From contig NC_043024.1 in NCBI RefSeq assembly GCF_006345805.1, positions 14,570,001 through 14,634,000 on the forward strand: a stretch of DNA of 64,000 nucleotides. The letters are read 5' to 3'. The notes under the pieces are model-generated. The model had not been told where the DNA came from and searched no databases. It worked only from the letters and a program-made list of their open reading frames with translations. This document shows positions 1,508-60,126 of the stretch, piece by piece; the first letter of the stretch is position 1; every line of letters starts with the position of its first letter. The translations under genes were made by a program, and so were the position numbers. Origin of the DNA: Octopus sinensis. Taxonomy: Eukaryota.

Positions 1508-1543
1508 CTGCAAGCACAGGTACTCCAACAGTCTCTTCAGCAG
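1508..1543 (+). CDS. Micro-exon family A ([12 protein letters not shown])
   Basis: ttatttctcttttgcAG|CTGCAAGCACAGGTACTCCAACAGTCTCTTCAGCAG|GTttgt; 36 nt, phase 1-1. Confidence 0.8.
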
Positions 1544-4500
1544 GTTTGTATATTTGATACTAAACCATATGTTTAGTCAATATAATGAAAGTACTTACTA
1601 GGTGTCTAAGTTTACCTTGTCTCTCACAGAATATAACTTATCAGTCTGGGATTAGTTTTAGTTAGGTTCATACAATCTAAAAGAAACAAAAATAAAATTC
1701 AAAAGTAACATTTGATCTTTACTTGTTCGTGTTGGCTGTAAATGTTCACCTCTTGTAGAACCAAGACTGAGGAAATTTTAGTTGGTGTTACTGAAAACTA
1801 TATTCTTCAAGACGACCAGATCCAAGAAACAACTGACACTACCTTAGTCTCGTTGGCTCTAGTAGAACATGTGACAAATGGCTGAACACTGAAATATCAC
1901 CAACTGAATTAAAGATTACTTATATAAATATGAAGAGTCAACTTAGAGCTGAACAGCAGGTCGGGATCTTAGATAATCTGAATTCAATATTCAATAGTGC
2001 CGGTGGCACATAAAAAGCACCATCCAATCGTGGCCTTTTGCAAGCCTCGTCTGGCACCTGTGCAGGTGGCACATAAAAAGCACCCACTACACTCTCGGGG
2101 TGGTTGGCGTTAGGAAGGGCATCTAGCTGTAGAAACGCTGCCAGATGTACTACACTTTTTTTTAGGGATAACACCCTTTTCTTCAAAATAATATGCAGCA
2201 TTCACCTCTGTCATCAAAGCAATTATTTCTGCTTAGTTCATCTTTATGATGCACAGTTCTGATGGTTTAGCCTGCAAATCTTGAGAAAAATCTCTAAATA
2301 AACATGGCATATTCTTTTTGCAAACAACTGTTATTTATTTGATCAAATCCTGCAGGTAACATTTAAAGAATTGTATTAGTTATTAACAATCCAAAAATAA
2401 CATATAATGCAAACAAATTGCTATTTTCTTGCAGGACCAAGTGTATCTGGCATATCTCTCACTCCATCAGGTAAGTACACTTCTACTGTATGTTTAGTGA
2501 TTATTATAAAAGTGTTACTGAATGCAATTTGTGATTCTGTGATAGAATTTATAGCTTATCATAAAGCGGTTTGAAATAATTATCAATAGATGTCTTGCAC
2601 ACAACTTGCACATGCAAGTGCTACCAGTCAAGAACTCTGCATACCAGAAACCAGCTAGTGTATGGGGTCATCAGGAGAGAATGCTCACCATTTTGGGGCC
2701 TACCTCTCGACGGCATCAATGTGCACCAGCCCCCTCACTGATATGAGGCTCTGCTTGCTACATCAACTGGTTATCAAATAAAGCTCAATATTCTTCTAGC
2801 CATCGCTCATCGTCTCTTTTTAACCAAATTCAGTGGCTAGCCTTCTCCACTGTAGTTTGGATATTGGTCACGGTGGGATTGACTTTACAATGAGTTAGGC
2901 CTAACGATAACAACAGTCGTCTCACACTGTGTCCAACGAACCCTCTACATCCAACTTCGAAACATCAGCAACATTCAGCCTGGCTGGGTTCACTTGTGGT
3001 AAAATGCTTACATATGGAGTTGGAACTGTTGTGGTGATAGACAGGAACATTGCAAAGCCAGCAGATCATACAATATTCATTTCTTTCATGCTTTCACATG
3101 TCCTCTGCAATCACAACCCATGTTTCACGACAGAGGAAATGTGAAAGCGTGAAAGAAATGAATCTAGGATGTTCCACAAGATGAGCAATGTCAATTTGCA
3201 TGTATGACTGAATCTAAGCATCTTGAAAGAAAAACCAGGCATAATAAACATCAGATGTGGTGCACATGAGAGGCATCTGTGCTGGTATGGTCATGTATGT
3301 ATGTATGCATTTCTGTACGCCACAAGGCTTTGGCTGGCCCAAGGCTGTACTAAAGGACACTTGCCCAACGTAACCTGTCACACAGTAGGACTCAGTGTGT
3401 GAACCATGTGGTTGCTTAAACATTATAATTCTAAGAAAACTTTAAATATTCATTTCAAATATTGGCTATATATATAACGGGAAGGTTTATGAAAATAAAC
3501 AAAAGACGAAGGCAGGTGGAGTAGAAGCAAACTAATGTATTAGTATGGCGCTCAGGAATAGAAATGGAACAAGTTTTTACATTTTGAGCGTACGCTCTTC
3601 GACAGAAAGATACACAGAAAAAACAAGGAGAGAAAAAATGCGTGTATGAGCTAACGATCTATCATGGCGTCCTGACCAAGTGGTTGAGCACTCCACAGAC
3701 ACATGTACCCTTATATATATATATGTGTGGAGGCGCAATGGACCAGTGGTTAGGGCAGTGGACTTGTGGTCGTAGGATCGCGGTTTCAATTCCCAGACCG
3801 GGCATTGTGAGTGTTTATTAAGCAAAAACACCTAAAGCTGCACGAGGCTCCAGCTGGGGATGGTGGTGAACCCTGCTGTACTCTTTCACCACAACTTTCT
3901 CTCACTCTTTCTTCCTGTTTCTGTTGTACCTGTATTTCAAAGGGCCAGCCTTATCACACTCTGTGTTATGCCGAATCTCCCCAAGAACTACGTTAAGGGT
4001 ACATGTGTCTGTGGAGTGCTCAGCCACTTGCACATTAATAAATGAGTTGCGACGTCACAGGTGCCAAGCTGTATCAGCCTATTCCTTTCCATTCGATAAC
4101 ACTGCTTGCGTAGAGAGGGGAGGCTGGTATGCATGGGCGACTGCTGGTCTTCCATAAACAACCTTGCCCAGACTTATGCCTCAGAGGGTATCTTTCAAAT
4201 ATTTATGACCGAATGGTGTCACATATATATCATCAAAATAAGCAACAAGAATAACATCGGTAATTTGGTATGATCGTTTCGCACTACATCATTTTATTAA
4301 ATGTTGTAAGTATTACAACAGTTTTAAAATGCTGAGCACTCATCAACCCTTAATAGAGGTTTTCCATTAATACATAATTTTCATATCAATTGATAACATT
4401 ATAGAGAAGGTAGATATATAGACAAAGATGTGGATTTAAATTTTAAGAACATTTAAGGTAGTGGAGTTTATCAACTGACTGGATAATATTCAGTTGCTAT

Positions 4501-7500
4501 GAACTGCTAGAAGATTCTGAGAAGAATGGACAATTGAAAGGAGACAAAAAAGATTTTCTATTTATAGAAATAGGGGTGAAATAGATGTCAAAGTTCCATA
4601 TAAAAAAATTTAGGTACATGTCACATTATTTTAATCAAAGTTTTTCAAAGAATGCATCTGTACATAATTAGTTAGTGAAAATTTATGTAATTTATTAACT
4701 GTGTAAAATTGTATAATACAAATAAATTATTTCTCTTTTGCAGCTGCAAGCACAGGTACTCCAACAGTCTCTTCAGCAGGTTTGTATATTTGATACTAAA
4801 CCATATGTTAGTCAATATAATGAAAGTACTTACTAGGTGTCTAAGTTTACCTTGTCTGTCACAGAATATAACTTATCAGTTTTGAATTAGTTTTAGTTAG
4901 GTTCATACAATCTAAAAGAAACAAAAAGAAAATTCAAAAGTAACATTTGAACTTTACTTGTTGGTGTTGGCTGTAAATGTTCACCTCTTGTAGAACCAAG
5001 ACTGAGGAAATTTTAGTTGGTGTTACTGAAAACTATATTCTCCAAAACGACCAGATCCAAGAAACAACTGACACTACCTTAGTCTCGTTGGCTCTAGTAG
5101 AACATGTGACAAATGGCTGAACACTGAAATATCACCAACTGAATTAAAGATTACTTATATAAATATGAAGAGTCAACTTAGAGCTGAACAGCAGGTCGTG
5201 ATCTTAGATAATCTGAATTCAATATTCAATAGTGCCGGTGGCACGTAAAAAGCACCATCCGATCGTGGCCTTTTGCCAGCCTCGTCTGGCACCTGTGCAG
5301 GTGGCACATGAAAAGCACCCATTACACTCTCGGAGTGGTTGGCGTTAGGAAGGGCATCTAGCTGTAGAAACGCTGCCAGATGTACTACACTTTTTTTTAG
5401 GGATAACACCCTTTTCTTCAAAATAATACGCAGCATTCACCTCTGTCATCAAAGCAATTATTTCTGCTTAGTTCATCTTTATGATGCACAGTTCTGATGG
5501 TTTAGCCTGCAAATCTTGAGAAAAATCTCTAAATAAACATGGCATATTCTTTTTGCAAACAACTGTTATTTATTTGATCAAATCCTGCAGGTAACATTTA
5601 AAGAATTGTATTAGTTATTAACAATCCAAAAATAACATATAATGCAAACAAATTGCTATTTTCTTGCAGGACCAAGTGTATCTGGCATATCTCTCACTCC
5701 ATCAGGTAAGTACACTTCTACTGTATGTTTAGTGATTATTATAAAAGTGTTACTGAATGCAATTTGTGATTCTGTGATAGAATTTATAGCTTATCATAAA
5801 GCGGTTTGAAATAATTATCAATAGATGTCTTGCAAACAACTTGCACATGCAAGTGCTACCAGCCAAGAACTCTGCATACTGGAAGCCAGGTAGTGTATGG
5901 GGTCATCAGGAGAGAATGCTCACCATTTTGGGGCCTACCTCTCGACAGCATCAATGTGCACCAGCCACCTCACTGATATGAGGCTCTGCTTGCTAGATCA
6001 GCTGTTTATCAAATAAAGCTCAATATTCTTCTAGCCATCGCTCATCGTCTCTTTTTAACCAAATTCAGTGGCTAGCCTTCTCCACTGTAGTTTGGATATT
6101 GGTCACGGTGGGATTGACTTTACGATGAGTTAGGCCTAACGATAACAACAGTCGTCTCACACTGTGTCCAACGAACCCTCTACATCCAACTTCGAAACAT
6201 CAGCAACATTCAGCCTGGCTGGGTTCACTTGTGGTAAAATGCCTGGATATGGAGTTGAATCTGTTGTGGTGATAGACAGGAACATTGCAAAGCCAGCAGA
6301 TCATACAATATTCATTTCTTTCAAGCTTTTACATGTCCTCTGCAATCACAACCCATGTTTCACGACAGAGGAAATGTGAAAGCGTGAAAGAAATGAATCT
6401 AGGATGTTCCACAAGATGAGCAATGTCAATTTGCATGTATGACTGAATCTAAGCATCTTGAGAGAAAAACCAGGCATAATAAACGTCAGATGTGGTGCAC
6501 ATGACAGGCATCTGTGCTGGTATGGTCATGTATGTATGTATGTATGTATACATTTCTGTATGCAATAAGGCTTTGGCTGGCCCAAGGCTGTAGTAAAAGA
6601 CACTTGCCCAACGTAACCTGTCACACAGTAGGACTCAGTGCGTGAACCATGTGGTTGCTTAAACATTATAATTCTAAGAAAACTTTAAATATTCATTTCA
6701 AATATTGGCTTTATATATATATATATATATATATAACGGGAAGGTTTATGAAAATAAACAAAAGACGAAGGCAGGTGGAGTAGAAGCAAACTAATGTATT
6801 AGTATGGCGCTCAGGAATAGAAATGAAACAAGTTTTTACATTTTGAGCGTACGCTCTTCGACAGAAAGATACACAGAAAAAACAAGGAGAGAAAAAATGC
6901 GTGTATGAGCTAACGATCTATCATGGCGTCCTGACCAAGTGGTTGAGCACTCCACAGACACATGTACCCTTATATATATATATGTGTGGAGGCGCAATGG
7001 ACCAGTGGTTAGGGCAGTGGACTTGTGGTCGTAGGATCGCGGTTTCAATTCCCAGACCGGGCATTGTGAGTGTTTATTAAGCAAAAACACCTAAAGCTGC
7101 ACGAGGCTCCAGCTGGGGATGGTGGTGAACCCTGCTGTACTCTTTCACCACAACTTTCTCTCACTCTTTCTTCCTGTTTCTGTTGTACCTGTATTTCAAA
7201 GGGCCAGCCTTATCACACTCTGTGTTATGCCGAATCTCCCCAAGAACTACGTTAAGGGTACATGTGTCTGTGGAGTGCTCAGCCACTTGCACATTAATAA
7301 ATGAGTTGCGACGTCACAGGTGCCAAGCTGTATCAGCCTATTCCTTTCCCTTTGATAACACTGCTTGCGTAGAGAGGGGAGGCTGGTATGCATGGGCGAC
7401 TGCTGGTCTTCCATAAACAACCTTGCCCAGACTTATGCCTCAGAGGGTATCTTTCAAATATTCATGACCGAATGGTGTCACATATATATCATCAAAATAA

Positions 7501-10500
7501 GCAACAAGAATAACATCGGTAATTTGGTATGATCGTTTCGCACTACATCATTTTATTAATGTTGTAAGTATTACAACAGTTTTAAAATGCTGAGCACTCA
7601 TCAACCATTAATAGAGGTTTTCCATTAATACATAATTTTCATATCAATTGATAACATTATAGAGAAGGTAGATATATAGACAAAGATGTGGATTTAAATT
7701 TTAAGAACATTTAAGGTAGTGGAGTTTATCAACTGACTGGATAATATTCAGTTGCTATGAACTGCTAGAAGATTCTGAGAAAAATGGACAATTGAAAGGA
7801 GACAAAAAAGATTTTCTATTTATAGAAATAGGGGTGAAATAGATGTCAAAGTTCCATATAAAAAAATTTAGGTACATGTCACATTATTTCAATCAAAGTT
7901 TTTCAAAGAATGCATCTGTACATAATTAGTTAATGAAAATTTATGTAATTTATTAACTGTGTAAAATTGTATAATACAAATAAATTATTTCTCTTTTGCA
8001 GCTGCAAGCACAGGTACTCCAACAGTCTCTTCAGCAGGTTTGTATATTTGATACTAAACCATATGTTTAGTCAATATAATGAAAGTACTTACTAGGTGTC
8101 TAAGTTTACCTTGTCTGTCACAGAATATAACTTATCAGTCTGGGATTAGTTTTAGTTAGGTTCATACAATCTAAAAGAAACAAAAATAAAATTCAAAAGT
8201 AACATTTGATCTTTACTTGGTGTTGGCTGTAAATGTTCACCTCTTGTAGAACCAAGACTGAGGAAATTTTAGTTGGTGTTACTGAAAACTATATTCTTCA
8301 AGACGACCAGATCCAAGAAACAACTGACACTACCTTAGTCTCATTGGCTCTAGTAGAACATGTGACAAATGGCTGAACACTGAAATATCACCAACTGAAT
8401 TAAAGATTACTTATATAAATAAGAAGAGTCAACTTAGAGCTGAACAGCAGGTCGTGATCTTAGATAATCTGAATTCAATATTCAATAGTGCCGGTGGCAC
8501 GTAAAAAGCACCATCCGATCGTGGCCTTTTGCCAGCCTCGTCTGGCACCTGTGCAGGTGCCACATAAAAAGCACCCATTACACTCTCGGAGTGGTTGGCG
8601 TTAGGAAGGGCATCTAGGTGTAGAAACGCTGCCAGATGTACTACACTTTTTTTTAGGGATAACACCCTTTTCTTCAAAATAATACGCAGCATTCACCTCT
8701 GTCATCAAAGCAATTATTTCTGCTTAGTTCATCTTTATGATGCACAGTTCTGATGGTTTAGCCTGCAAATCTTGAGAAAAATCTCTAAATAAACATGGCA
8801 TATTCTTTTTGCAAACAACTGTTATTTATTTGATCAAATCCTGCAGGTAACATTTAAAGAATTGTATTAGTTATTAACAATCCAAAAATAACATATAATG
8901 CAAACAAATTGCTATTTTCTTGCAGGACCAAGTGTATCTGGCATATCTCTCACTCCATCAGGTAAGTACACTTCTACTGTATGTTTAGTGATTATTATAA
9001 AAGTGTTACTGAATGCAATTTGTGATTCTGTGATAGAATTTTTAGCTTATCATAAAGCGGTTTGAAATAATTATCAATAGATGTCTTGCAAACAACTTGC
9101 ACATGCAAGTGCTACCAGCCAAGAACTCTGCATACTGGAAGCCAGGTAGTGTATGGGGTCATCAGGAGAGAATGCTCACCGTTTCGAGGCCTACCTCTCG
9201 ACAGCATCAATGTGCACCAGCCACCTCACTGATATGAGGCTCTGCTTGCTAGATCAGCTGTTTATCAAATAAAGCTCAATATTCTTCTAGCCATCACTCA
9301 TCGTCTCTTTTTAACCAAATCCAGTGGCTAGCCTTCTCCACTGTAGTTTGGATATTGGTCACGGTGGGATTGACTTTACGATGAGTTAGGCCTAACGATA
9401 ACAACAGTCGTCTCACACTGTGTCCAACGAACCCTCTACATCCAACTTCGAAACATCAGGAACATTCAGCCTGGCTGGGTTCACTTGTGGTAAAATGCTT
9501 ACATATGGAGTTGGAACTGTTGTGGTGATAGACAGGAACATTGCAAAGCCAGCAGATCATACAATATTCATTTCTTTCATGCTTTCACATGTCCTCTGCA
9601 ATCACAACCCATGTTTCACGACAGAGGAAATGTGAAAGCGTGAAAGAAATGAATCTAGGATGTTCCACAAGATGAGCAATGTCAATTTGCATGTATGACT
9701 GAATCTAAGCATCTTGAAAGAAAAACCAGGCATAATAAACATCAGATGTGGTGCACATGAGAGGCATCTGTGCTGGTATGGTCATGTATGTATGTATGTA
9801 TGTATGTATGCATTTCTGTATGCCACAAGGCTTTGGCTGGCCCAAGGCTGTAGTAAAAGACACTTGCCCAACGTAACCTGTCACACAGTAGGACTCAGTG
9901 TGTGAACCATGTGGTTGCTTAAACATTATAATTCTAAGAAAACTTTAAATATTCATTTCAAATATTGACTATATATATATATATAACGGGAAGGTTTATG
10001 AAAATAAACAAAAGACGAAGGCAGGTGGAGTAGAAGCAAACTAATGTATTAGTATGGCGCTCAGGAATAGAAATAGAACAAGTCTTTTACATTTTGAGCG
10101 AACGCTCTTCGACAGAAAGATACACAGAAAAAACAAGGTGAGAAAAAATGCGTGTAGGAGCTAACGATCTATCATGGCGTCCTGACCAAGTGGTTGAGCA
10201 CTCCACAGACACATGTACCCTTATATATATATATGTGTGGAGGCGCAATGGACCATTGGTTAGGGCAGTGGACTTGTGGTCGTAGGATCGCGGTTTAAAT
10301 TCCCAGACCGGGCATTGTGAGTGTTTATTAAGCAAAAACACCTAAAGCTGCACGAGGCTCCAGCTGGGGATGGTGGTGAACCCTGCTGTACTCGTTCACC
10401 ACAACTTTCTCTCACTCTTTCTTCCTGTTTCTGTTGTACCTGTATTTCAAAGGGCCAGCCTTATCACACTCTGTGTTATGCCGAATCTCCCCAAGAACTA

Positions 10501-25100: not shown

Positions 25101-25718
25101 CTGGTACTCCAAATGGTAAGTACAGTTTTATTGTATGATTAGTCATAAAAAAGATAAACGTTGTCCCTTTCAAGCCTAACCAGGCTCATGGGCCCAGTTT
25201 CCCAGTTTTTGTGGTGTATGTGTTCCCTCCAGCTGAACAGGATGCCAGTCCATTGCAGTGTTACTCGAGAAACAGAGAGAGAGTAAGAGAAAGTTGTGGC
25301 GAAAGAGTACAAGAGGGGTCACTACCATCCCCTGCAGGAGCCTCGTGGAGCTTTTAGGTGTTTTTGCTCAATAAACACACACAACACCTGGTCCGGGAAT
25401 CGAAACCGCGATCCTCCAACCACGAGCCCACTGCCCTAACCACTGGGTCATTGCGCCTCCACTATGATTAGTCATCACGGTGAAAGTATTAATGGATACA
25501 ATGAGTTATTCAGTGATAGGATTTCAGCCTAGCATCAAGTGTTTTATTTTAATTATGAATAACATATGAAGCTATTTCTCATCAGATTCAATCAGTGTAG
25601 CCAGGTGAAGTCATGTGGAACATTAGTGTACATGATATATATTGGGAGTTTAACCTGTGCTGTGTGTATGTATTTGTTTTTCTTGAAGAAATCCCTTCTA
25701 ACATTTAAAGAAATGAGC

Positions 25719-50902: not shown

Positions 50903-52557
50903 GCAGTCCTGGAACACTTATGAAATGATTGTCTTTTAACGTGTCCATCGTTTTTGTTCTTCATGTTTTCCACATCTGCAAAACGTTTTCCCTTAACCCT
51001 TTAGTGTTCGCATTATTCTGCCAAAACAAGTGCTTTTTTATCCACATTGTTTTGAACTAACCATGCATTATCTTGTAGTTATGAGATTTTGATGAGGTAG
51101 CTGTTAATTTTTAAGATGATATTGTAGGGCTGGTGAGAGAGACCAGATCTGGCCAGTTTGAACATAAAACAGGCAGAATACTTTTGGCCGGATATGGCCG
51201 GTTTGAATGCTAAAGGGTTAAAGACTCTTTTTATTCAGGGGAACAAAAAGAAGTCACAGGGAGCAAAATCAAGTAAATAAAAAGGGTGGGTAAGTAGGGT
51301 CATGCCATTTTTCGTCAGAAACTGTCTCACACTTTTGTGAGCAAGTGAGGCATAAATTTTGTTGCAGCTCCCTTCTTTCGCAATTCCTCGCTCAAAATTT
51401 TTTGGCAGGAGCTCCAGGACATACCAGTCATATCAACAAGTTTGTCAATTTTTTGGCAGCGGTCCTCTAAGATTGGCTCATGAATTTTCATTCGTTCAGG
51501 AGGTTGTTGATTACCCTGAATGAGATTGATCTTCAAGCGACAAGTAACCATTCCTAAAGCATGAAAATCAATAGTAAACTTGTGTTTTGCTCATGGTAGC
51601 ATCCTTGTAAGCAGTTTGAAGCATAGCAACTGTTTCATATTTCTTTACTGCCCACTGGGGGTTAAACATAAAGGGGACAAGCAAGGACAGACAAAGAGAT
51701 TAAGTCGATTACATCGACCTCATTGCGTAACTGGTACTTAATTTATCAACCCTGAAAGGATGAAAGGCAAAGTCAACCTCAACGGAATTTGAACTCAGAA
51801 AGTAAGGGAAGACGAAATACCGCTAAGCAGTTTGCCCAGTGTGCTAACGTTTCTGCCAGCTTGCCACCTTTATAGCATAGCAACTGTTTCAGCCACCATT
51901 TTCCCCAGGGGAAAATAGAATTTCCCACAAGCATGCTGTTTCTTCGTTTCAGTCATTGCAAAAATTGACAAACAGGAGAGAAACACTGCAAAACAAAGAT
52001 GCACCACGTACCGGTATGACCTCAGTGGATGCTACCAGTCAGCAGGTAGATACCTAGGGGTCGCATCAAGTGACTTCCAATGACAGAAGCCTGAACTACA
52101 ACAGGCTTGTCACACAGAGTATGTTTCTGGTTACTTTTGAGTATCTCTTCATATAGAATAATTGTATTATTAACAATCCAAAAATAACATATAATGCCAT
52201 TTTCTTGCAGGACCAACAACATCTGGCATATCTCTTGCTCCATCAAGTAAGTACAATTCTACTGTTTGTTTAGTGATTATTAGGAACGTATTACTGAATG
52301 TAATTCATTGCTGTTTGACAGAATATTTAGATATTCATCAAGGGATTTGAAACAATTATGAATAACATATGAAGCTATTTCTCATCAAAAACATTCAGCA
52401 GGAGTGGCTGTGTGGTAAGTAGCTTGCTTACCAACCACATGGTTCCGGGTTCAGTCCCACTACATGGCACCTTGGGCAAGTGTCTTCTGCTATAGCCTCG
52501 GGCTGATCAAAACCTTGTGAGTGGATTTGGTAGATGGAAACTGAAAGAAGCCCGTCG

Positions 52558-52594
<37 letters not shown>

Positions 52595-55500
52595 ATATTT
52601 GTGTGTGTGTTTGTGTGTCTGTGTTATTCCCCCCAACATCACTTGACAACTGATGCCGGTGTGTTTGCATCCCTGTAACTTAGCAGTTCAGCAAAAGAGA
52701 CCGATAGAATAAGTACTAGGCTTACAAAGAATAAGTCCTGGGGTCAGTTTGCTCGACTAAAGGTGGTGCTCCAGCATGGCTGCAGTCAAATGACTGAAAC
52801 AAGTAAAAGAGAGTAAAGAGAGCCTAGCTGGGTTCACTTGTAGTAAAAGGATTACATATAGAGGTGAAACTATACTATTAGTCCTATATGAACTATTGTA
52901 TAAATAATCAATTTGAGAGAGAGAGAGGAAACGAAAGTTCTTCAGTAATGTAATAGATAACATGTATACCAGCAAGAAATATAGACATTGCTTTGAAGCT
53001 GCCAGTTGGACAGTTTGTCTTCTCTCACTCAACATGTTACCTGTAATGACTAATATCATTTAAACATTGAATAAGTCAGCAGTTAATTCATTCATTCATA
53101 ATATATTTACATAATATATTTAATATATTTACTGCCCAGTGGTTAGGGCAGTGGACTCGCGGTTTCGATTCCCAGACCGGGCGTTGTGAGTGTCTATTGA
53201 GCGAAAACACCTAAAGCTCCACGAGGCTCCGGCAGGGGATGGTGGTGATCCCTGCTGTACTCTTTCACCACAACTTTCTCTCACTCTTACTTCCTGTTTC
53301 TGTTGTACCTGTATTTCAAAGGGCCGGCCTTGTCACTCTCTGTGTCACGCTGAATATCCCCGAGAACTACGTTAAGGATACACGTGTCTGTGGAGTGCTC
53401 AGCCACTTACACGTTAATTTCACGAGCAGGCTGTTCCGTTGATTCGGATCAACTGGAACCCTCGTCGTCGTAACCGACGGAGTGCTTCCATGTCCATTTA
53501 CTGTTACATATAAATAGAGATTTTCTTAACTTGATTTTCTACAATTAATGAAATACTTACACTGTCGAGTTGGTAGATCCTAACTACGATATTTAGATTT
53601 TACTAACATGTTTATTTACAGATTGATGTTGCAATTCAGTTCTACATTTAAGAGATGAGGAATTATGTACATTATTTACATTCGAGGGATATTTGTCCTC
53701 ACCTTGTTTGTTGTTAACACAACGTTTCGGCTAATATACCCTCCAGCCTTCTTCAGGTGTCCTGGAGAAATTTCGAACCTGGGTTCTCATTCCTAAGGTA
53801 TTTTTCGATGTTATTATTATTATTATTATCATTATTGTTGTTGTTGTTGTTCAGGAATTGAACTCAGAATCTTGGGGTTAGTAGCCCATGCTCTTAACCA
53901 CTACGCTCATGGGCATATGGCGTAGTGGTTAAGAGTGTGAGCTACTAACCCCTAGATTCCGAGTTTGATTCCTGAACAATAATAATAATAACAAACATTG
54001 AAAAATACCTGAGGAATACCCAGGTTTGAAATTTCCCCAAGACACCTGAAGAAGGCTGGAGGGTATATCAGCTGAAATGTGTCAACAACAAACAAGATGA
54101 AGACAAATATCCATTGAATGTAAATAATGTAAACATTGATGTTGCAATTGTTACTTAACACAGAGGTGTTTATGCTGAATACCAGTCGCTAGTATAGGAG
54201 AAGGAATCTCTGGTGAGAGGAGAAAATGTGTTTGAGCTTGACAAGTGGACAATGTTATGTCTTCATCTTAGTGAGAGATCTTTTTACATGAGGTTACAGA
54301 AGCATAACTGCTAACTGGCCAGGAAAACCCTCTATGAATCAATCCCCTAACCCCTCTGCAGTCTTCTGTATTTTCCATGCACCTCAATCTATAAATATGA
54401 TTTGGTGCAAAACTGCATGGAATTTTGCATTAATCTTAGAATTATTTTTGAGACATTTATCAGCTTAAATGTTGTATACCAGGAAGTAAATGGACATTTA
54501 TTCTTTGATTACAGGTTTCACTGCTTCAAAAGGTTTTCAAACTGGTATGGAAATTTTAATATCAACAAATAAGATGTTTTTATATTCTGTCTATATGTAA
54601 TTGTTATAACTATTGAGTTGTCTGGAAAGTTTGTGCTGATTTTTAAAGGAAAGAAAACGGTCAATAAATACTTGCCATTACATTTTTAATCAACCAAATA
54701 TGAACCATTTTGTTGCACAATGCGTCTCCATCTTTCCTTTAACTTGAAAATACCCTCTTCCCAGAATTGAGGTGCTTTCATGGCAAAGAATTCATCAAGG
54801 TGTCTTTTTACATAATCCAAGGAATTGAAATTTTTACCATTAAGACTATTCTGCAGAGACCTGAATAAGTGGAAATCCGAAGGAGCAATATCTAGTGAAT
54901 ATGGAGGGTGGGGTAACACATCCCAGCCGAGCTGCAGCAATTTTTGTCTGGTTCCCAAAGCATCAAGTGCCGAAAATGAACTTTCTTGTCTTCCATTTTA
55001 AAGGGTTACAGAATTAACACAGCTTATAGGAATATAAACCTTCTTCCTCGAAAAGATAGCTTAAACTGTGCTCTAAATGGAGGTGTAGTCAAATCCTATT
55101 TTATGAACTGAGCCATGTTCTAAAATAAGTCAAAATGTAATCTACTATAAATTGGCACGAACTTTCTGGACAACCCAATATAATTTAAGTCTTCGTTTTT
55201 GGATCAGTTTTTGTATGAAACTATATAGCTGACATGATTTAACAAAAATTGAAGTTTAAAATGGAATATGTTGAGTATGAAATATGTTGAGTAATAGATT
55301 CCTAAAATACTGAATGAATGTGTGGTGGACAAAAGTAGCATCTTTAAAGACATGCTACATGCATTGTTATTTCAATTGAGCAGGAGTTCTTATGATTACA
55401 GTACAAAGGACAGCACGACCATGAGAGAAAACAATAATTTTTGTTTCGTTCATCTTTATGATGCACAGCTCTGATGGTTTGATTGACAAATCTTCAGAAA

Positions 55501-58500
55501 AATCTCTAAATAAATATGATATATTCTTTTCTAAATCACTGTTATTTATTTAATTAAGTCATACATATGACATATTGAAGAATAGTACTTGTTATTAACA
55601 CTCTTCAAAAACAACATATGATGCAAATAAATTGCCATTTTCTTGCAGGATCAACAATATCTGGAATATCTCTCACTCCATCAGGTAAGCAAAGTTCTAA
55701 TGTATGTATCTTGGATGATTTAACAAAAATTAAAGATCAAAATGGAAGAAACACAACACTTGTATGAAATATGTTGAGTAATAGATTCTTAAAATACTGA
55801 ATGAATGTGTGGTGGACAAAAGTAGTATCTTTGAAGACATGCTACATGCATTGTTATTTCAATTGAGCAGGAATTGTTATGATTACAGTACAAAGGACAG
55901 CACGACCATGAGAGAAAACAATAATTTTTGTTTCGTTCATCTTTATGATGCACAGTCCTAATGGTTTGGTCTGCAAATCTTTAAAAAATTTCTAAATAAA
56001 TATGGTATATTTTTTTTATTGAAAACATTAAAAATTTTTTATGAATACAAAATCATATACATTTGTAAGTGATTAATAAAAAGAAATGATTTTTTCCCAT
56101 TCATAGATTTCTAGTACACATATATTCAGATATTTAACAACAAAACAATTTCTGTTTTATTCATCTTTACAACACACAGTCTTAATGGTTTGGTCTGCAA
56201 ATCTTCAATAAAATTATTTCAATTATACAAGAATTCTTACACTTACAATGCAGAGGACATTGTGATTGTGAGAGTTTTAATCAAAGATACACATTGATCT
56301 ATTGTTGTATATGTGTTAGAGAGTCAGATATATAATGAAACAATATGAAATACATAATCTGATCAATAAGTATCCGGACTGTTGCCATAATAACGAAGCT
56401 GAAGCATGCAGAGTGAAACACCTTGGCACAAATTCACCTTGAACTCCGTTGTGCATGCACACTGTTTTAATGTTCTAGCTCACTTCTGCTGTTTACAGCA
56501 GTGCTTGGTAGGAAGGTGTGTAGCGTGTGATTGTTGCATTGACCATGACAGAGAAAGTTGAGCAGAGAATCTGCATCAAATTTTGCTAAAAGCTTGGTGG
56601 TACCTGCTCAGAGGCCTACACAAAGTTGCAGAAAGTATATGGAGAGGAGTGTATGAGCCGCACACAAGAATACAAATGTTTCGGACGTTTCCAAGATGGC
56701 TAAAAAAAATGTCATTAGTGATGAAGGTTCTGGGAGAACTGCAACCAGCAGAACTGAGAAAAACATCACAGATGTACATGCAGCTTTGAGGGGAAATCAT
56801 CGAATCATCATCCATGAGTTATCAGAGGGTGTGCGGATTAGTTACGGTTCAGTTCAGTCCATCATCACTGAAGATTTGGGTATGAGACGAGTATCTTCCA
56901 AGTTTGTGTCAAAAATGCTTTCAGCTGACCAAAAAGACACTCGGGTTTCAGTTGCACAAAATCTCCTTGATTGTGTCAAGAATGATGAAAAGCTTTTGAA
57001 AATTGTCATAACAGGTGATGAATCATGGGTGTATGATTATGACCCCGAAACAATGGCTTAGTCTTCGCAGTGGAAGGCGCCAACCTCTCAAAGACTGAAG
57101 AAAGCACAAATGAATCAAAGCAACATGAGGACACTGTTGACCGTTTTCTTCGACTACAAGGGGATTGTTCATCATGAGTATGCTCCACCTGGTTGGACTG
57201 TGAACAAGGAGTATTACTGTTACATTTTGCAGTGTTTGCAGGAAGCTATTCATCGGAAAAGGCCACAATTGCCTGCATCCAGTGAGTGACAATTGCACCA
57301 TAAAACACAGTTTCCCATTCAGCAAACTGCTTGTGCAGCAGTTTTTGCCTAGACACAGCAGTGCCCTGGTCCAACAGCCACTGCATTCCCCAAAATTCAC
57401 CCCGTGTGACTTTTTCCTCTTTCCAAAAATCAAATCCCACTTGAAAGGAAGAAGATTTCAGAACATCCTTGAAATCAAAGTGAATGTGAAGAGGCAGCTG
57501 CTGATTATCCCAGAAAATGAGTCCCAGGAATGCTTCTATCAATGGAAATAGTGCTAGATTAAGTGTGGGACTTCTGAGGGTGACTACTTTGAAGGAGTTT
57601 AAATGCCAAATTGGTATGCATTGTAGTTTTGTTTTTATAGCACCAGTCCAGATACTTATTGATCAGAACTCGTATATGTAGATTGTAATGTGTGAACTTA
57701 TATCCAAGTTTATCATTTACATTTTATTTAATGAAATCTTATATATATATATATAAAACTGAGAATATGTGTGTGTGTCTGTATGTTTGCATCACTAAAA
57801 CTTGAGAATTACCCAACCAAATTCATTCAAGTTTTACACATGTCTTCCTTAGAGTCCATGCAGTGTCATGAGCCAAAACAATTTTCAACTTCTTGCCTAA
57901 TGCGAGCGCAGAGCAATCTCTTATCTCTTATTTCAGTATTATGTGTCAAAAGTGAAACAATAACATCTCTATTGTAATGTGAGATAATACATTCAATTTT
58001 AATCAGCTTCACTATTAATACTTTCACTTTGTATATATATATATATATATATATTAGTTTCATTTCTATTACTTTCACTATGTGTGTGTCTATGTATATA
58101 TATGTGTGTATATATATATATATGTATGTATGTATATTTATGTATATGTATGTATGTATATTTATGTATATGTAAGTATTTATTTATATGCATATATATA
58201 TATATGTATGCATATATTTGTATATATATGTATGTATATATACATATTTATACATATAGTGAGAATTTACGAAAAAACAAAAGATGAAGACGGGTGTGTA
58301 AACAACAAACAGATATATTAATTTAATGCTCAGGAAGTAAGAAAGTCTTTTACATTTCAATCCTATGCATATATATATATATATAATTTTAGGGAGTATA
58401 ACTCCAAACCTACAGGGAAAAGTTTAATTTAGTATTAAATCAAATTTCACAGTATAAATATATAAAATATAAATTAGAGATAAAACCACAATTAGGCAAC

Positions 58501-59269: not shown

Positions 59270-60126
59270 TTCAATACTTGTGGAAATATTCTGATATTCA
59301 CCCAAGTATTCAATTTTTAAAGTTATAATAGAAAACATTTAAAATTTTTTTATGAATACAAAAATCATATACATATAGGCGCAGGAGTGGCTGTGTGGTA
59401 AGTAGCTTGTTTACCAGCCAGATGGTCCCGGGTTCAGTCCCACTGCGTGGCACCTTGGGCAAGTGTCTTCTACTATAGCCCCAGGCCGACCAAAGCCTTG
59501 TGAGTGGATTTGGTAGACGGAAACTGAAAGAAGCCCGTCATATATATGTTTATATATACATACATGCGTGTGTGTGTTTGTGTGTCTGTGTTTGTCCCCC
59601 TAGCATTGCTTGACAACCGATGCTGGTGTGTTTATGTCTCCGTTACTTAGTGGTTCGGCAAAAGAGACCAATAGAATAAGTACTGGGCTTACAAGAGGAT
59701 AAGTCCCGGTGTCGAGTTGCTCAATTAAAGGTGGTGCTCAAGCATGGCCGCAGTCAGCTGACTGAAACAAGTAAAAGAGTATAAGAGTATTTGTAAGTGA
59801 TTAATAAAGAGAAATGCTTTTTTTCCCCATTCATAAATTTCTAGTACATATATTCAGATATTTAACAACAAAACAATAATTTCTGTTTCATTCCTCTTTA
59901 CAATGCATAGTCCTACTAGTTTGGTCTGCAAATCTTGAAAAAAATCTCTAAATAAATATGATATATTCTTTTCTAAATCACTGTTATTTATTTAATTAAG
60001 TCATACATATGACATATTGAAGAATAGTATTTGTTATTAACACTCTTCAAAAACAACATATGATGCAAATAAATTGCCATTTTCTTGCAGTACCAACAAT
60101 ATCTGGAATATCTCTCACTCCATCAG
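1508..60126 (+). CDS. Partial micro-exon gene encoding a Ser/Thr/Pro/Gly-rich mucin-like repeat region (24 well-supported exons, 834 nt; start and stop outside window)
   Basis: 24 segments of 36 or 30 nt, each YAG-preceded and GT-followed, all phase 1-1, none with a stop or indel. Joined in order: ([24 protein letters not shown])x4 [182 protein letters not shown] (first residue assumes an upstream G). No transcript evidence available. Confidence 0.8.
2435..2470 (+). CDS. Micro-exon family B ([12 protein letters not shown])
   Basis: gctattttcttgcAG|GACCAAGTGTATCTGGCATATCTCTCACTCCATCAG|GTaagt; 36 nt, consensus donor. Confidence 0.85.
2590..2960 (-). mobile_element. HERO-like (RLE-endonuclease) non-LTR retrotransposon 3' fragment; also about 5825-6195, 9081-9450, 12333-12703
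   Basis: Reverse complement of the + strand copy at 18405-18819; ends at the same ...GCAAGACAT terminus. Confidence 0.7.
2970..3215 (-). mobile_element. Decayed RTE-type LINE fragment (once per tandem unit)
   Basis: Minus frame [30 protein letters not shown] aligns by eye to the RTE-like ORF at 19893-20273. Confidence 0.55.
4744..4779 (+). CDS. Micro-exon family A, tandem unit 2
   Basis: Identical to 1508-1543, same splice sites. Confidence 0.8.
5670..5705 (+). CDS. Micro-exon family B, tandem unit 2
   Basis: Identical to 2435-2470, AG/GTAAGT. Confidence 0.85.
8002..8037 (+). CDS. Micro-exon family A, tandem unit 3
   Basis: Identical to 1508-1543. Confidence 0.8.
8926..8961 (+). CDS. Micro-exon family B, tandem unit 3
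   Basis: Identical to 2435-2470. Confidence 0.85.
11254..11289 (+). CDS. Micro-exon family A, tandem unit 4
   Basis: Identical to 1508-1543. Confidence 0.8.
12178..12213 (+). CDS. Micro-exon family B, tandem unit 4
   Basis: Identical to 2435-2470. Confidence 0.85.
13320..13357 (-). ncRNA. Minimal (Penelope-type) hammerhead-like motif in a 230-bp repeat; decayed copies near 414-452, 3.6 kb, 6.85 kb, 10083-10120, 17595-17632
   Basis: Minus strand TCTTT-CTGTCGA-A-GAGC-GTAG-GCTC-GAAA-TG-TA-AAAGA: stem I, CUGANGA-like core (A6>U), stem II hairpin, GAAA, UH site. Confidence 0.5.
14807..14990 (+). mobile_element. Mariner left-end fragment
   Basis: TA-TTGGGTTGTCCGGAAAG TIR, same family as 15121-15686, truncated. 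Confidence 0.8.
15121..15686 (+). mobile_element. Internally deleted mariner (about 560 bp)
   Basis: TA-flanked TIRs TTGGGTTGTCCGG...CCGGACAACCCAA; transposase C-terminus [16 protein letters not shown]. Confidence 0.92.
15986..16015 (+). CDS. Micro-exon family C ([10 protein letters not shown])
   Basis: tttcaatcttttacAG|GTACAACTGGTCCATCTGTTTCCTTCACAG|GTatat; 30 nt, phase 1-1, S/T/P/G content like the other families. Confidence 0.65.
17907..17942 (+). CDS. Micro-exon family A variant ([12 protein letters not shown])
   Basis: 36 nt, AG/GTTTGT; 2 synonymous changes (ACA>ACT, GTC>GTT) and 1 T>A relative to tandem copies. Confidence 0.8.
18405..18819 (+). mobile_element. HERO-like non-LTR retrotransposon 3' end; also 27690-28103 and 44786-45200
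   Basis: Translates [26 protein letters not shown]...[14 protein letters not shown]...*, resembling the C-terminus of HERO/NeSL-type RLE elements, followed by 3' UTR. Confidence 0.75.
19570..20340 (-). mobile_element. RTE-type LINE 3' fragment
   Basis: ORF 19893-20273 [18 protein letters not shown]...RRLSWYDHM is typical of the post-RT region of RTE LINEs; related fragment at 43060-43350 on +. Confidence 0.8.
20429..20449 (+). pseudogene. Family F paralog with dead donor
   Basis: Same 21 nt as 46384-46404, preceded by caacAG but followed by CTaaga instead of GTaaga. Confidence 0.35.
20698..21719 (-). mobile_element. Non-autonomous Helitron-like element enclosing micro-exon D (21305)
   Basis: Minus strand begins A|TCTTTATATATAAAACTG and ends with hairpin GCCCG-AGCAATGC-CGGGC then CTAG|T; flanks are contiguous in the paralog near 46645. 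Confidence 0.7.
21305..21340 (+). CDS. Micro-exon family D ([12 protein letters not shown])
   Basis: atactttattgcAG|CACCCAGATTAGCTGGCCCATCGATTACTCCAACAG|GTaaga; 36 nt. Confidence 0.75.
22091..22272. repeat. (AAT)n/(GAT) microsatellite
   Basis: Direct reading; source of the poly-Ile ORFs. Similar (ATT)n at about 43500-43550. Confidence 0.97.
22332..22569. repeat. Inverted repeat, arms about 97 bp, spacer about 45 bp
   Basis: 22332-22428 is the reverse complement of about 22473-22569; embedded between AAT tracts. Confidence 0.9.
23246..24551 (+). mobile_element. Tc1-like deletion derivative with nested SINE and fold-back
   Basis: TA-CACTGGCGAAAATAAATTTAAGACCGATG...CATCGGTCTTAAATTTATTTTCGCCAGTG-TA; remnant [16 protein letters not shown]. 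Confidence 0.88.
24041..24467. repeat. Near-perfect fold-back element (arms 173/174 bp, spacer 80 bp)
   Basis: 24041-24213 vs 24294-24467: one mismatch and one 1-nt indel by eye. Confidence 0.93.
25080..25115 (+). CDS. Micro-exon family D ([12 protein letters not shown])
   Basis: tactttattgcAG|TCCCCAGAATAACTGGCCCATCTGGTACTCCAAATG|GTaagt; 36 nt. Confidence 0.8.
26677..26937. repeat. Fold-back MITE-like element (arms about 100 bp)
   Basis: TATATATTAGAAGAAAAGAGGTACTCAGAAATC... mirrored by ...GATTTCTGAGTACCTCATTTCTTCTAATATATA. Confidence 0.88.
27071..27106 (+). CDS. Micro-exon family A variant ([12 protein letters not shown])
   Basis: ttttttctgtcttccAG|CTTCAAGCATAGCTATTCCAACAGTCTCTTCAGCAG|GTttgt; acceptor region remodelled but still pyrimidine-rich. 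Confidence 0.75.
28221..28442. mobile_element. piggyBac-type MITE (222 bp); second copy 45318-45539
   Basis: TTAA-CCCTTTTGTTACC...GGTAACAAAAGGG-TTAA. Confidence 0.9.
29915..30170. mobile_element. SINE family 3 (GAAAGGATGAAAGGCAAAGT core); also 35510-35905 (two) and 51640-51875
   Basis: Dispersed copies of about 250 bp; reverse strand carries tRNA-like A and B boxes. Confidence 0.7.
30540..30902 (-). mobile_element. Helitron-like 5' fragment upstream of exon D (30965)
   Basis: Minus strand begins A|TCTCTTATAATAAATGTGAAAATCC; absent from the paralogous D cassette at 25.0 kb; left boundary approximate. Confidence 0.45.
30965..31000 (+). CDS. Micro-exon family D ([12 protein letters not shown])
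   Basis: gctttattgcAG|TACCCAGAATAACTGGCCCATCTGGTACTCCAACAG|GTaagt; 36 nt. Confidence 0.8.
32187..32216 (+). CDS. Micro-exon family E ([10 protein letters not shown])
   Basis: ttattctttgattacAG|GTTTCACTGCTTCAAAAGGTTTTCAAACTG|GTatgg; 30 nt, phase 1-1. Confidence 0.7.
32486..32867 (+). mobile_element. tRNA-derived SINE family 1, full-length; other copies in each tandem unit and at 14460(-), 16447, 23470(-), 25265(-), 31150(-), 41036-41416(-), 47040(-), 53134-53489
   Basis: GGAGGCGCAATGGCCCAGTGG...GGTTTCGATTCCC head; TSD TACATGCATTGTT. Confidence 0.9.
33470..34070 (-). mobile_element. Second, divergent HERO-like element 3' end
   Basis: Minus frame [33 protein letters not shown] parallels [14 protein letters not shown]; part of its downstream region recurs inverted at about 62250-62390. 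Confidence 0.6.
34282..34317 (+). CDS. Micro-exon family B variant ([12 protein letters not shown])
   Basis: gccattttcttgcAG|GAACAACAACATCTGGCATATCTCTTACTCCATCAA|GTaagt; 36 nt. Confidence 0.75.
34469..34895 (+). mobile_element. tRNA-derived SINE family 2 with internal (TA)n(TG)n; also 20790-21135, 26240-26643(-), 28715-29126(-), 29490-29908(-), 40026-40410, 49405-50160, 52398-52821, 59378-59789
   Basis: GCAGGAGTGGCTGTGTGGTAAG...GGTTCAGTCCC head and GAAACAAGTAAAAGAG tail shared by all copies. Confidence 0.9.
35319..38899 (-). mobile_element. Decayed Gypsy-type LTR retrotransposon with internal inversion
   Basis: 5-bp TSD AAATC on both sides; LTRs TGTGATA...AACA (38899-38653 and 36090-35319, the latter interrupted); PBS-like TGGCGACAAG at 38650-38641; integrase ([21 protein letters not shown]) on minus; RT ([19 protein letters not shown]) on plus. 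Confidence 0.85.
37836..38337. mobile_element. Tc2/pogo-like MITE inserted in the Gypsy RT
   Basis: TA-CCATAAGTCCTCGAGTATAG...TTATACTCAAAGATTTCCGG-TA; removing it restores GTT AGG ATA TAC CAA GAT GAT (VRIYQDD). Confidence 0.8.
39329..39358 (+). CDS. Micro-exon family E ([10 protein letters not shown])
   Basis: Identical to 32187-32216, AG/GTATGG. Confidence 0.7.
39628..39657 (+). CDS. Micro-exon family E variant ([10 protein letters not shown])
   Basis: 30 nt, AG/GTATGA; local tandem copy 299 nt downstream of the previous E cassette. Confidence 0.7.
41532..41561 (+). CDS. Diverged family C micro-exon candidate ([10 protein letters not shown]), weak donor
   Basis: aagttttacAG|TAGTAATTGGTCCATCTGTTTCTTCCCAAT|GTatat; homologous to 15986 including upstream flank; could be a pseudo-exon. 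Confidence 0.4.
41726..41755 (+). CDS. Diverged family E micro-exon candidate ([10 protein letters not shown])
   Basis: attctttgattgaAG|AGATAACTGGTTCTAAAGACCCTAAAACTG|GTttag; length, AG and GT kept, flanks homologous to E cassettes; AAG acceptor is weak. Confidence 0.45.
41860..42283. repeat. Fold-back element (arms about 180 bp); related half copy at about 60360-60560
   Basis: TATACATAAATATGAAAGAGTGACC...TAAATGCA mirrored by TGCATTTAC...GGTCGCTCTCTCATATTTATGTATA. Confidence 0.9.
43724..43759 (+). CDS. Micro-exon family A variant ([12 protein letters not shown])
   Basis: 36 nt, ttctcttttgcAG / GTttgt. Confidence 0.8.
43934..44487 (-). mobile_element. Internally deleted mariner, same derivative as 15121
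   Basis: TA-flanked TIRs; minus-strand [13 protein letters not shown]. Confidence 0.9.
45811..46140 (+). mobile_element. Repeat family with (CAT)n end and CTGGATGCCCTTCCTAACGCCAACCAC core (RTE-tail-like); minus copies at about 1990-2145 in each unit, 47820-48060, 50290-50900
   Basis: Multiple dispersed, internally repetitive copies; LINE affiliation is inferred. Confidence 0.7.
46384..46404 (+). CDS. Candidate 21-nt micro-exon, family F (VQGFIYK)
   Basis: gatttccctattctctcagcAG|TTCAGGGGTTCATTTATAAAT|GTaaga; phase 1-1 and stop-free, but composition unlike the other exons. Confidence 0.35.
46856..46891 (+). CDS. Micro-exon family D ([12 protein letters not shown])
   Basis: tactttattgcAG|CCCCCAGAATAGCTGGACCATCTGTTACTCCAACAG|GTaagt; 36 nt. 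Confidence 0.8.
47494..47518 (+). pseudogene. Truncated family E exon remnant
   Basis: GGTTCAAAAGGTCTTCAAACTG|GTATGG retained, but a deletion removed the native acceptor and first codons; 25 nt from the nearest AG would shift frame. Confidence 0.6.
48070..49221 (+). mobile_element. Near full-length decayed mariner transposase, parent-like for the 560-bp derivatives
   Basis: [27 protein letters not shown] motifs across frameshifts; right end resembles the TIR region; left boundary approximate. Confidence 0.85.
50188..52151 (-). mobile_element. Third mariner family, fragmented by nested insertions
   Basis: TIR pair TGAGGGGGTACCCAAAAG / CTTTTGAGTATCTCTTCA with TA flanks; minus ORF ...[20 protein letters not shown]. 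Confidence 0.7.
50997..51217. mobile_element. piggyBac-type MITE, second family
   Basis: TTAA-CCCTTTAG...CTAAAGGG-TTAA. Confidence 0.8.
52211..52246 (+). CDS. Micro-exon family B variant ([12 protein letters not shown])
   Basis: gccattttcttgcAG|GACCAACAACATCTGGCATATCTCTTGCTCCATCAA|GTaagt; 36 nt. Confidence 0.75.
53637..54134. mobile_element. Palindromic element: two divergent tRNA-like heads, each arm with a hammerhead-like motif
   Basis: Arms mirror around about 53910; 15-bp direct repeat ATTGATGTTGCAATT at 53622 and 54135; single site in the paralog at about 38946. Confidence 0.85.
53716..53761 (-). ncRNA. Minimal hammerhead ribozyme-like motif (partner at 54041-54083 on + is damaged after GAAA)
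   Basis: Minus strand GACAC-CTGAAGA-A-GGCTG-GAGGGTATAT-TAGCC-GAAA-CG-TT-GTGTT. Confidence 0.6.
54515..54544 (+). CDS. Micro-exon family E ([10 protein letters not shown])
   Basis: Identical to 32187-32216, AG/GTATGG. Confidence 0.7.
54613..55178 (-). mobile_element. Internally deleted mariner, same derivative as 15121
   Basis: TA-flanked TIRs; ORF 54686-54958 [16 protein letters not shown]. Confidence 0.92.
55649..55684 (+). CDS. Micro-exon family B variant ([12 protein letters not shown])
   Basis: gccattttcttgcAG|GATCAACAATATCTGGAATATCTCTCACTCCATCAG|GTaagc; 36 nt. Confidence 0.8.
56353..57672 (+). mobile_element. Full-length decayed mariner, second family (1.32 kb)
   Basis: TIRs CTGATCAATAAGTATCCGGAC / GTCCAGATACTTATTGATCAG, TA flanks; [35 protein letters not shown] with stops and frameshifts. 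Confidence 0.92.
57737..57960 (+). mobile_element. Helitron-like 5' fragment
   Basis: A|TCTTATATATA...AAAACTGAGAATATGTGTGTGTGTCTGT resembles the 5' end of the 21719 element; no 3' CTAG hairpin seen. Confidence 0.4.
59203..59270. repeat. (TC)n microsatellite; also (CA)n 17430-17490, (ATCT)n 17735-17790, (GT)n 34650-34690, (GAT)n 50870-50900 and many (TA)n
   Basis: Direct reading. Confidence 0.95.
60091..60126 (+). CDS. Micro-exon family B variant ([12 protein letters not shown])
   Basis: gccattttcttgcAG|TACCAACAATATCTGGAATATCTCTCACTCCATCAG|GTaagt; 36 nt. Confidence 0.8.

Follow-up and report, generated by a model that had tools for sequence, protein, structure and literature searches.

The window analyzed here, a stretch of 64,000 nucleotides of the Octopus sinensis genome (contig NC_043024.1, positions 14,570,001 to 14,634,000, designated C28 below), is probably the interior of a very large gene for an extracellular-type glycoprotein, in which a mucin-like spacer built from micro-exons lies between discoidin-like domains. 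On the + strand of the window we identified 26 candidate micro-exons that belong to five families and are all of phase 1-1, as well as a single decayed relic. The array is real, extends far past the window and is bigger than first described. The original prediction, made from the letters of the window, had announced at least 24 exons in five families between positions 1508 and 60126; these positions mark exactly where the first exon begins and the last one ends, and the number of families stood, while the count in the window rose to 26. Distances written as -x or +y kb are relative to the window.

Census and confinement of the micro-exons

The exons measure 36 nt in 20 of the 26 cases and 30 nt in the remaining six. 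A pyrimidine tract followed by CAG forms the acceptor of 25 exons and AAG that of a single one, whereas a GT donor follows every exon and every exon reads openly from its third base (frame offset 2). The common strand, AG/GT borders, lengths divisible by three, phase 1-1 and open frame that had been claimed thus hold for all 26 candidates on the + strand. Families A (seven members), B (four members) and C (eight members) consist of 36-nt exons, whereas families D (two members) and E (five members) consist of 30-nt exons. The individual features are as follows, with matches referring to units of a protein from O. bimaculoides (XP_052833088.1) that is described further below.

1508..1543, +, micro-exon A1: 36 nt, ttttgcag/gtttgt; first residue (A); 11/11 residues match an O. 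bimaculoides unit
2435..2470, +, micro-exon C1: 36 nt, tcttgcag/gtaagt; first residue (G); 11/11 residues match XP_052833088.1
4744..4779, +, micro-exon A2: same sequence as A1; inside the 3.25-kb tandem unit
5670..5705, +, micro-exon C2: same sequence as C1
8002..8037, +, micro-exon A3: same sequence as A1
8926..8961, +, micro-exon C3: same sequence as C1
11254..11289, +, micro-exon A4: same sequence as A1
12178..12213, +, micro-exon C4: same sequence as C1
15986..16015, +, micro-exon D1: 30 nt, (G)TTGPSVSFT; ttttacag/gtatat; similar to O. bimaculoides GSVGPSVSFP
17907..17942, +, micro-exon A5: 36 nt; splice sites of A1, 3 substitutions relative to A1; 10/11 residues match the ortholog
21305..21340, +, micro-exon B1: 36 nt; tattgcag/gtaaga; 9/11 residues match the ortholog
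25080..25115, +, micro-exon B2: 36 nt; from splice-site scan and ortholog unit comparison
27071..27106, +, micro-exon A6: 36 nt; cttccag/gtttgt; 9/11 residues match O. bimaculoides unit ASIATPTVSSA
30965..31000, +, micro-exon B3: 36 nt; from splice-site scan and ortholog unit comparison
32187..32216, +, micro-exon E1: 30 nt, (G)FTASKGFQT; gattacag/gtatgg; similar to O. bimaculoides GFTGSKGLQT
34282..34317, +, micro-exon C5: 36 nt; last base A; junction codon with next exon AGT (Ser)
39329..39358, +, micro-exon E2: 30 nt, FTASKGFQT
39628..39657, +, micro-exon E3: 30 nt, FTGSQGFQT
41532..41561, +, candidate micro-exon D2: 30 nt, VIGPSVSSQ; last base T; doubtful or restricted
41726..41755, +, candidate micro-exon E4: 30 nt, ITGSKDPKT; weak AAG acceptor, gtttag donor; doubtful
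43724..43759, +, micro-exon A7: 36 nt; from splice-site scan and ortholog unit comparison
46856..46891, +, micro-exon B4: 36 nt; 11/11 residues match an O. bimaculoides unit
47499..47533, +, E-type exon relic: keeps 3' half and donor; acceptor and 5' half gone
52211..52246, +, micro-exon C6: 36 nt; last base A
54515..54544, +, micro-exon E5: 30 nt, FTASKGFQT
55649..55684, +, micro-exon C7: 36 nt; from splice-site scan and ortholog unit comparison
60091..60126, +, micro-exon C8: 36 nt; from splice-site scan and ortholog unit comparison

Together the exons account for 894 of the 58,619 nt spanned, or 1.5%, which agrees with the roughly 1.4% given originally, and the introns between them range from 164 to 5319 nt. 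The window has 37% G+C and is rich in microsatellites and transposon fragments. The 298 residues encoded by the 26 exons comprise 40% Ser plus Thr, 12% Pro and 3% charged residues, and contain no Cys. Family A can be read without a stop in all three frames. Its donor, GTTTGT, and that of family D, GTATAT, deviate from the GTRAGT consensus, whereas the donors of families B and C and most acceptors are near consensus.

The first two bases of each exon complete a codon, and the last base is G or A in every exon but 41532, so that junction codons among these other exons are never stops. Exon 41532 ends in T, and its junction with 41726, which starts with AG, or with any C exon, which starts with GA, creates a stop codon. 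The neighbors 41532-41561 and 41726-41755 are hence mutually exclusive, since the T|AG junction is a stop; both belong to a block that is a duplicate of the 15.9-34.3 kb region. As phase 1-1 is maintained throughout, any combination of exons keeps the frame, just as had been anticipated for every subset, with the risk of a junction stop at the doubtful 41532. The statement that all copies are clean was accurate with respect to internal stops, which occur in none of the exons, but not with respect to the terminal T of 41532, the AAG acceptor of 41726 and the relic at 47499-47533.

These numbers are far from those obtained by chance. A scan of the window returned 24 hits on the + strand (18 distinct sequences) as compared to 2 on the - strand, and Markov shuffles submitted to the same scan gave 4.6 ± 2.3 hits. 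A stricter scan over 264 kb yielded 82 hits on the + strand, with lengths peaking at 36, 30 and 42 nt, versus 11 on the - strand. We then used exons of families A, C, B and E together with their flanks as queries against the whole 2.72-Gb genome. All copies were confined to the + strand of C28:14.51-14.65 Mb, besides one stray. The original prediction had named a dispersed transposable element family as the finding that would speak against it; we rejected the core of such an element, given that families A, C, B and E occur only in one 140-kb stretch of one strand, plus the stray. The latter, on contig C23 (25,129,506-25,129,578, +), comprises one E-type exon plus flanking sequence at 90% identity and was the sole family member found off the locus.

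Further micro-exon families of 42 nt were observed from -98.5 to -85 kb and from +156 to +164 kb, namely, SSVSIPYSESTVT and SSTVPPYSGSIQT. They have the phase of the exons in the window and GTTTGT or GTTAGT donors, and match 14-residue repeats of O. bimaculoides.

The ortholog and the flanking domains

A search with the joined peptides of the candidate exons retrieved UPI00071D88CB (537 aa, E = 1e-31). Its 90% cluster includes XP_052833088.1, the 1260-aa product of the uncharacterized O. bimaculoides gene LOC106881592, which spans 158 kb. In this protein, units of 10 or 12 residues meet precisely where the exon scan places the borders, and their first codon, which is split, encodes G, A, V or E. 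Between 6 and 11 of the 9 to 11 residues of the exons in the window match these units, with four perfect matches. This agreement fixes frame and phase independently of the exon scan. The modular, Ser/Thr/Pro/Gly-rich coding region that had been predicted is thus borne out both by composition and by a protein that joins the units at the expected borders. Unit types follow one another in the window as A, C, D, A, B, B, A, B, E, C, E ... C, a succession collinear with the second half of the ortholog, with extra copies in O. sinensis.

The similarity continues on both sides of the window. Two domains of ~135 aa flank the spacer at ~-75 kb and ~+90 kb, each distributed over two exons of ordinary size (~270 and 135 nt). 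On the contig and strand of the window, the upstream domain exons lie at -74.8 and -70.1 kb (84-86% identity for the first and 63-64% for the second), and the downstream domain exons at +90.4 and +94.6 kb (78-83% identity). Additional copies of the domain were found from -130 to -110 kb and at +96.4 kb, and the last domain at +177 kb (87% identity). Two small exons, VIPVDFETPYQ (-67,030) and DYFGTVHS (-64,100), are 100% identical in both species. With collinear domains and units on one strand and high identity to LOC106881592, the window gene is, by sequence comparison, the ortholog of this O. bimaculoides gene. Since flanking domains map to both sides, the window occupies the middle of a gene that extends over at least 300 kb, and the proposal that folded domains would appear on extending it both ways agrees with the predicted discoidin-like domains at ~-75 kb, ~+90 kb and finally +177 kb.

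The two genes share the order of the discoidin-like domains, units of 10, 12 and 14 residues and several identical micro-exon peptides, and their domain exons are 78-87% identical, except for the second exon of the upstream domain (63-64%). They differ in size, with 158 kb in O. bimaculoides and at least 300 kb in O. sinensis, and in the number of repeats between two domains, with 27 units in the former and ~68 candidates in the latter. Furthermore, the O. bimaculoides model is devoid of the A-C unit that is repeated five to six times in O. sinensis.

A signal-like start is absent from the ortholog model XP_052833088.1 (1260 aa, begins MPSASSTVPSYS). A protein database search (127-400 and 459-1460 aa) revealed no protein with the window units besides the O. 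bimaculoides cluster. The X1 and X2 models of O. sinensis LOC118768321 (147 and 136 aa) end at -66,026 to -65,995 (C28:14,503,975-14,504,005), before the window, in a terminal exon that encodes GLSYCKHMCQV followed by a stop, 1 kb past the 33-nt micro-exon. They represent either a genuine short isoform with one discoidin-like domain or a truncated model. The array may be unannotated in the O. sinensis genome, as public models near the locus appear to stop before it. The gene had been called hidden, which may be appropriate for O. sinensis, where we found no protein model with the window units among the records searched, but not for O. bimaculoides, whose ortholog is present in RefSeq as an uncharacterized protein. 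Literature searches on micro-exons in octopus, LOC106881592 or octopus mucin exons retrieved nothing relevant to this locus or to cephalopod micro-exon arrays.

The flanking domain was not recognized by sequence profiles. A Pfam search returned no family at E values up to 1, and a profile search of PDB sequences gave nothing meaningful. Among 1.84 billion cluster representatives there were 9 hits, of which those with a folded domain were from octopus or unnamed and the rest were of low complexity; none of the 9 was a flatworm protein. An AlphaFold model of the domain based on 19 aligned copies reached a pLDDT of 83.5 and a pTM of 0.78 (confident in one of five models), and the top Foldseek matches were factor VIII C2, neuropilin b1, the CASPR2 discoidin domain, CBM32 and retinoschisin, with E values of ~5e-5 and TM scores of 0.55-0.65. 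These matches share the beta-sandwich of the discoidin or galactose-binding-like fold, and we predict that the flanking domains have the discoidin (F5/8 type C) fold. Because the fold matches while Pfam and PDB sequences do not, the domains are called discoidin-like by fold and not by family membership. The N-terminal Cys is nearly invariant, and a C-terminal Cys is present in most full-length copies, several of which read IIACF. The single-sequence fold of the 537-aa protein had a pLDDT of 33 and provided no usable model. It seems that this is a discoidin-like domain family missed by sequence profiles and nearly confined to octopuses. Distant paralogs of the first domain exon (27-43% identity) were observed on contigs C9 (75,099,790-75,230,966) and C2 (30,810,182-30,810,391), and the family therefore has other loci in the genome.

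Growth of the array and constraint on its exons

The array grew by tandem and segmental duplication of blocks composed of exons and introns. The duplicated blocks in the window are as follows.

1..14379, +, tandem array of a ~3.25-kb unit (intron, A exon, intron, C exon): copies 96-97% identical; runs ~4-5.6 kb further upstream
25006-25718 and 46782-47494, +, segmental duplicate: 96.9%
27581-28606 and 44678-45703, +, segmental duplicate: 97.4%
34260-35170 and 52189-53095, +, segmental duplicate: 94.2%
38946-39427 and 54135-54613, +, segmental duplicate: 96.3%

When five of the 3.25-kb units were aligned, none of the exon columns varied, as compared to 9.1% of the intron columns. The variation is clumped, with 23% of all 36-column windows being invariant, and hence the identity of the four A and four C copies is weak evidence of constraint. 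We rejected it as a proof of selection, as the invariant blocks around the young exons also overrun the exon ends, by 28 to 163 columns. The young 3.25-kb copies are recent duplicates and do not count as independent evidence.

Comparisons between older paralogs are informative in this respect. Identity was 72-94% over the 20 nt upstream of the exon, 70-92% over the 10 nt downstream and 67-82% in the exon body, and dropped to 50-67% in the distal flanks, with the exception of those downstream of family A. Gaps were absent from the exons, whereas they made up 4-20% of the flanks, and where exon length has changed in other parts of the array (36 to 21 nt and 30 to 27 nt), the frame is kept. In the coding frame, pN/pS between paralogs was about 1 (0.6-2.3), and classical purifying selection is consequently not demonstrated. 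We discarded dN/dS as evidence for coding, given that it is ~1 in the true frame and uninformative for repeats so short. The assertion that paralogs differ by synonymous or mostly conservative changes was thus incorrect; composition and splice signals are retained instead.

This retention was quantified by a neutral simulation in which the 169 observed substitutions were placed randomly on the family consensus sequences. The number of Ser and Thr residues was expected to fall from 215 to 191 ± 6, whereas 216 were observed (P = 2e-4). Similarly, 3.2 exons with stops were expected and none observed (P = 0.03), and 38 charged residues were expected as compared to 26 observed (P = 0.001). These P values are optimistic, because the simulation treats family members as independent despite their shared ancestry. 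With the shared ancestry of the copies ignored in this way, the data show that selection keeps the splice signals, a length divisible by three, Ser and Thr, low charge and an open frame, but not the exact residues. A cross-species contrast of exons and introns with O. vulgaris was dropped, as the introns of this species are also 95-99% identical and thus too close.

Spacer, splicing and precedents

These data indicate that the protein alternates Cys-bounded domains of ~135 residues and predicted discoidin fold with long disordered spacers, and that the spacer in the window is assembled from 30- and 36-nt exons separated by introns of 0.2-5.3 kb filled with transposable elements. With 40% Ser plus Thr and 12% Pro over 298 residues in five repeat families, the spacer lies well above the >20% Thr plus Ser in repeated Pro/Thr/Ser-rich units that define mucin-like sequences (PMC9417175). 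It also keeps Ser and Thr while other residues drift, with a pN/pS of ~1 and a simulation that ignores shared ancestry. Judged by this composition, the spacer may form a densely O-glycosylated, mucin-like bottle-brush that would keep discoidin domains of lectin-like or adhesive character at a given distance. The length of the spacer would depend on the number of exons in the genome and on those that the spliceosome includes. As each repeat is a symmetric exon of its own, length could be changed both in the genome, by block duplication, and in RNA, by inclusion or skipping.

Explanations that question the exons as such fit the data poorly. The segments might be noncoding and represent the conserved core of a transposable element or of a repeat of the intronic or satellite type, with AG and GT present by chance. 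They are indeed repeated and lie within duplicated blocks, and such short frames easily stay open, that of family A even in three frames. However, apart from one stray copy, the families are restricted to a 140-kb stretch of one strand; the units recur, with the predicted frame and borders, in a protein annotated in another species; and the splice flanks are the part conserved best. This highly improbable reading is already close to refuted. There is also very little chance that the assembler copied one unit several times. Although tandem units of 3.25 kb are difficult to assemble and exon sequences are identical among their copies, the copies differ at 9% of the alignment columns and by indels, and are therefore distinct loci; moreover, most other exons are in unique or old duplicated surroundings. 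More weight, although we still consider it unlikely, has the view that a minority of copies is spliced and that most recent duplicates are unused pseudo-exons carried along by the segmental duplication of introns. The ~68 candidates between the two nearest domains, as compared to 27 units in the O. bimaculoides model, imply that many O. sinensis copies may go unused; the young units are 96-97% identical throughout, so that their intact splice sites require no selection; and there are decayed copies, both in the window (47499, 41532 and 41726) and outside, where the donor was lost at -28,432 and +65,676. Against this, older copies with 6-9 changes per 30-36 nt retain splice sites, length and frame, the in-frame length variants suggest frame selection across the array, and the window contains a single clear relic.

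Two further readings concern the use of real exons in splicing. They may be constitutive, forming a many-exon PTS region that is not subject to regulated skipping and that resembles micro-exon genes in architecture only. We regard this as a realistic possibility of somewhat less than even chances, considering that near-consensus sequences are found at most acceptors and at the donors in families B and C, and that skipping is suggested solely by discrepancies among computed models of the gene, which are possibly annotation noise. UPI00071D88CB, a 2015-type O. bimaculoides model, and XP_052833088.1 differ exactly by GITGPNCTHT plus APPGSPISST, two 30-nt units, whereas the computed O. sinensis models XP_036370448.1 and XP_036370449.1, isoforms of LOC118768321, differ exactly by the 33-nt exon at -67,030. 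Two independent pairs of models thus differ by whole micro-exons, which argues against constitutive use, as do the weak donors of families A and D and the symmetric phase typical of cassette exons. Among human exons, symmetric ones that encode disorder undergo alternative splicing most frequently, and exons of this kind originate by tandem duplication (PMC3632108). At the other extreme, the array might be a combinatorial cassette system with a tissue-specific or stochastic choice among ~70 micro-exons, and the approximately three-fold expansion in O. sinensis an adaptive tuning of mucus or adhesive material. We consider this quite improbable. If it were true, one gene would give rise to a very large number of different spacers, varying in length and glycan density, between its lectin-like domains, and would be a cephalopod counterpart of the diversification by micro-exon genes or of the Dscam type, in a structural glycoprotein.

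The favored architecture, a mucin-like micro-exon spacer between discoidin-like domains, can be compared to several known systems. Schistosome micro-exon genes (MEGs), to which the array had been likened, consist of symmetric micro-exons of 3-81 bp with introns of up to 5 kb, and their products are secreted, have 189 aa or less and possess an N-terminal signal peptide and a conserved hydrophobic motif (PMC10526429). The octopus gene shares with them very short symmetric exons, long introns, fast residue divergence and expansion driven by duplication (PMC10526429). In contrast, nearly all coding sequence of MEGs is in micro-exons, whereas here these are limited to the spacers within a giant protein of several domains, and the composition is PTS-rich and not hydrophobic. 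The octopus gene also has ordinary domain exons of ~270 and 135 nt, its ortholog model comprises 1260 aa and the gene extends over at least 300 kb, as compared to a secreted MEG product of at most 189 aa. We therefore rejected membership in the schistosome MEG family, as there is no sequence relationship, the product is not small and the start of the ortholog is not signal-like. The resemblance holds for the symmetric tiny exons and long introns, but the locus is not a self-contained micro-exon gene, since normal-size domain exons are part of it.

A closer functional precedent is provided by the integumentary mucins of frogs, the repeats of which are spread over many small exons separated by class 1-1 introns. 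One of them, FIM-C.1, is reported to be highly polymorphic via alternative splicing (PMC7177656, citing Hauser and Hoffmann 1992). These are likewise mucins composed of shuffled modules, but belong to another phylum and combine trefoil-factor and von Willebrand factor type modules instead of discoidin-like domains. Other long runs of short symmetric exons, many of them cassettes, encode the disordered spacer or elastic sequences of elastin and titin PEVK. These differ from the octopus array in composition and cellular setting, and their exons tend to exceed 30-36 nt. In most cases, a mucin-like region is encoded by one large repeat-rich exon, the length of which changes only via DNA copy number. 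The repeats of classical PTS domains are within exons, whereas each octopus repeat is a separate exon. The retention of Ser and Thr amid residue drift in the octopus spacer corresponds to what has been reported for mammalian mucins, in which the copy number of PTS repeats evolves quickly and Ser/Thr are retained while other residues drift (PMC9417175). A mucin-like spacer built from micro-exons is unusual, but not unprecedented. It is also a warning for genome annotation, as the coding density is 1.5% and no exon is visible in an ORF track.

A tandem repeat of 35 kb with a 21-nt period was observed on the + strand ~48 kb downstream of the window (C28:14,677,800-14,712,400; +107.8 to +142.4 kb), between the third and fourth discoidin-like domains. 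One of its frames encodes the heptad (T-T-S-I-P-T-T)n or ATTSIPS, with ~50% Ser plus Thr and 13% Pro. Open frames are up to 3354 aa long, with shifts of frame along the array. This repeat is absent from the O. bimaculoides protein model and looks like a classical giant mucin PTS exon. With a micro-exon spacer and a heptad repeat of classical type (35 kb) within 50 kb of each other on one strand, the locus offers a natural comparison. In O. vulgaris, a region of OX597840.1 (locus L050, 31643-34395, - strand) that aligns with ~89% identity to the O. sinensis heptad repeat is annotated as a gene for a 645-aa Na_Ca_ex protein. The reverse frame of the O. sinensis repeat encodes VVGIDVV repeats, and the Na_Ca_ex call is probably an annotation artefact of the heptad repeat.

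Several other elements were noted in the window. Apparent fragments of mariner/Tc1-type transposases and reverse transcriptases were noticed by eye in introns at 48613-49029 (+), 56696-57061 (+), 19893-20273 (-) and 38301-38684 (+). An interspersed element of ~400 bp occurs in both orientations, for example, at 26238-26653, 28720-29132, 40024-40433 and 59373-59788. A tRNA-Met(CAT)-like sequence at 63492-63566 (+), with 32.4 bits as compared to an Rfam threshold of 29, could be a gene or the head of a tRNA-derived SINE.
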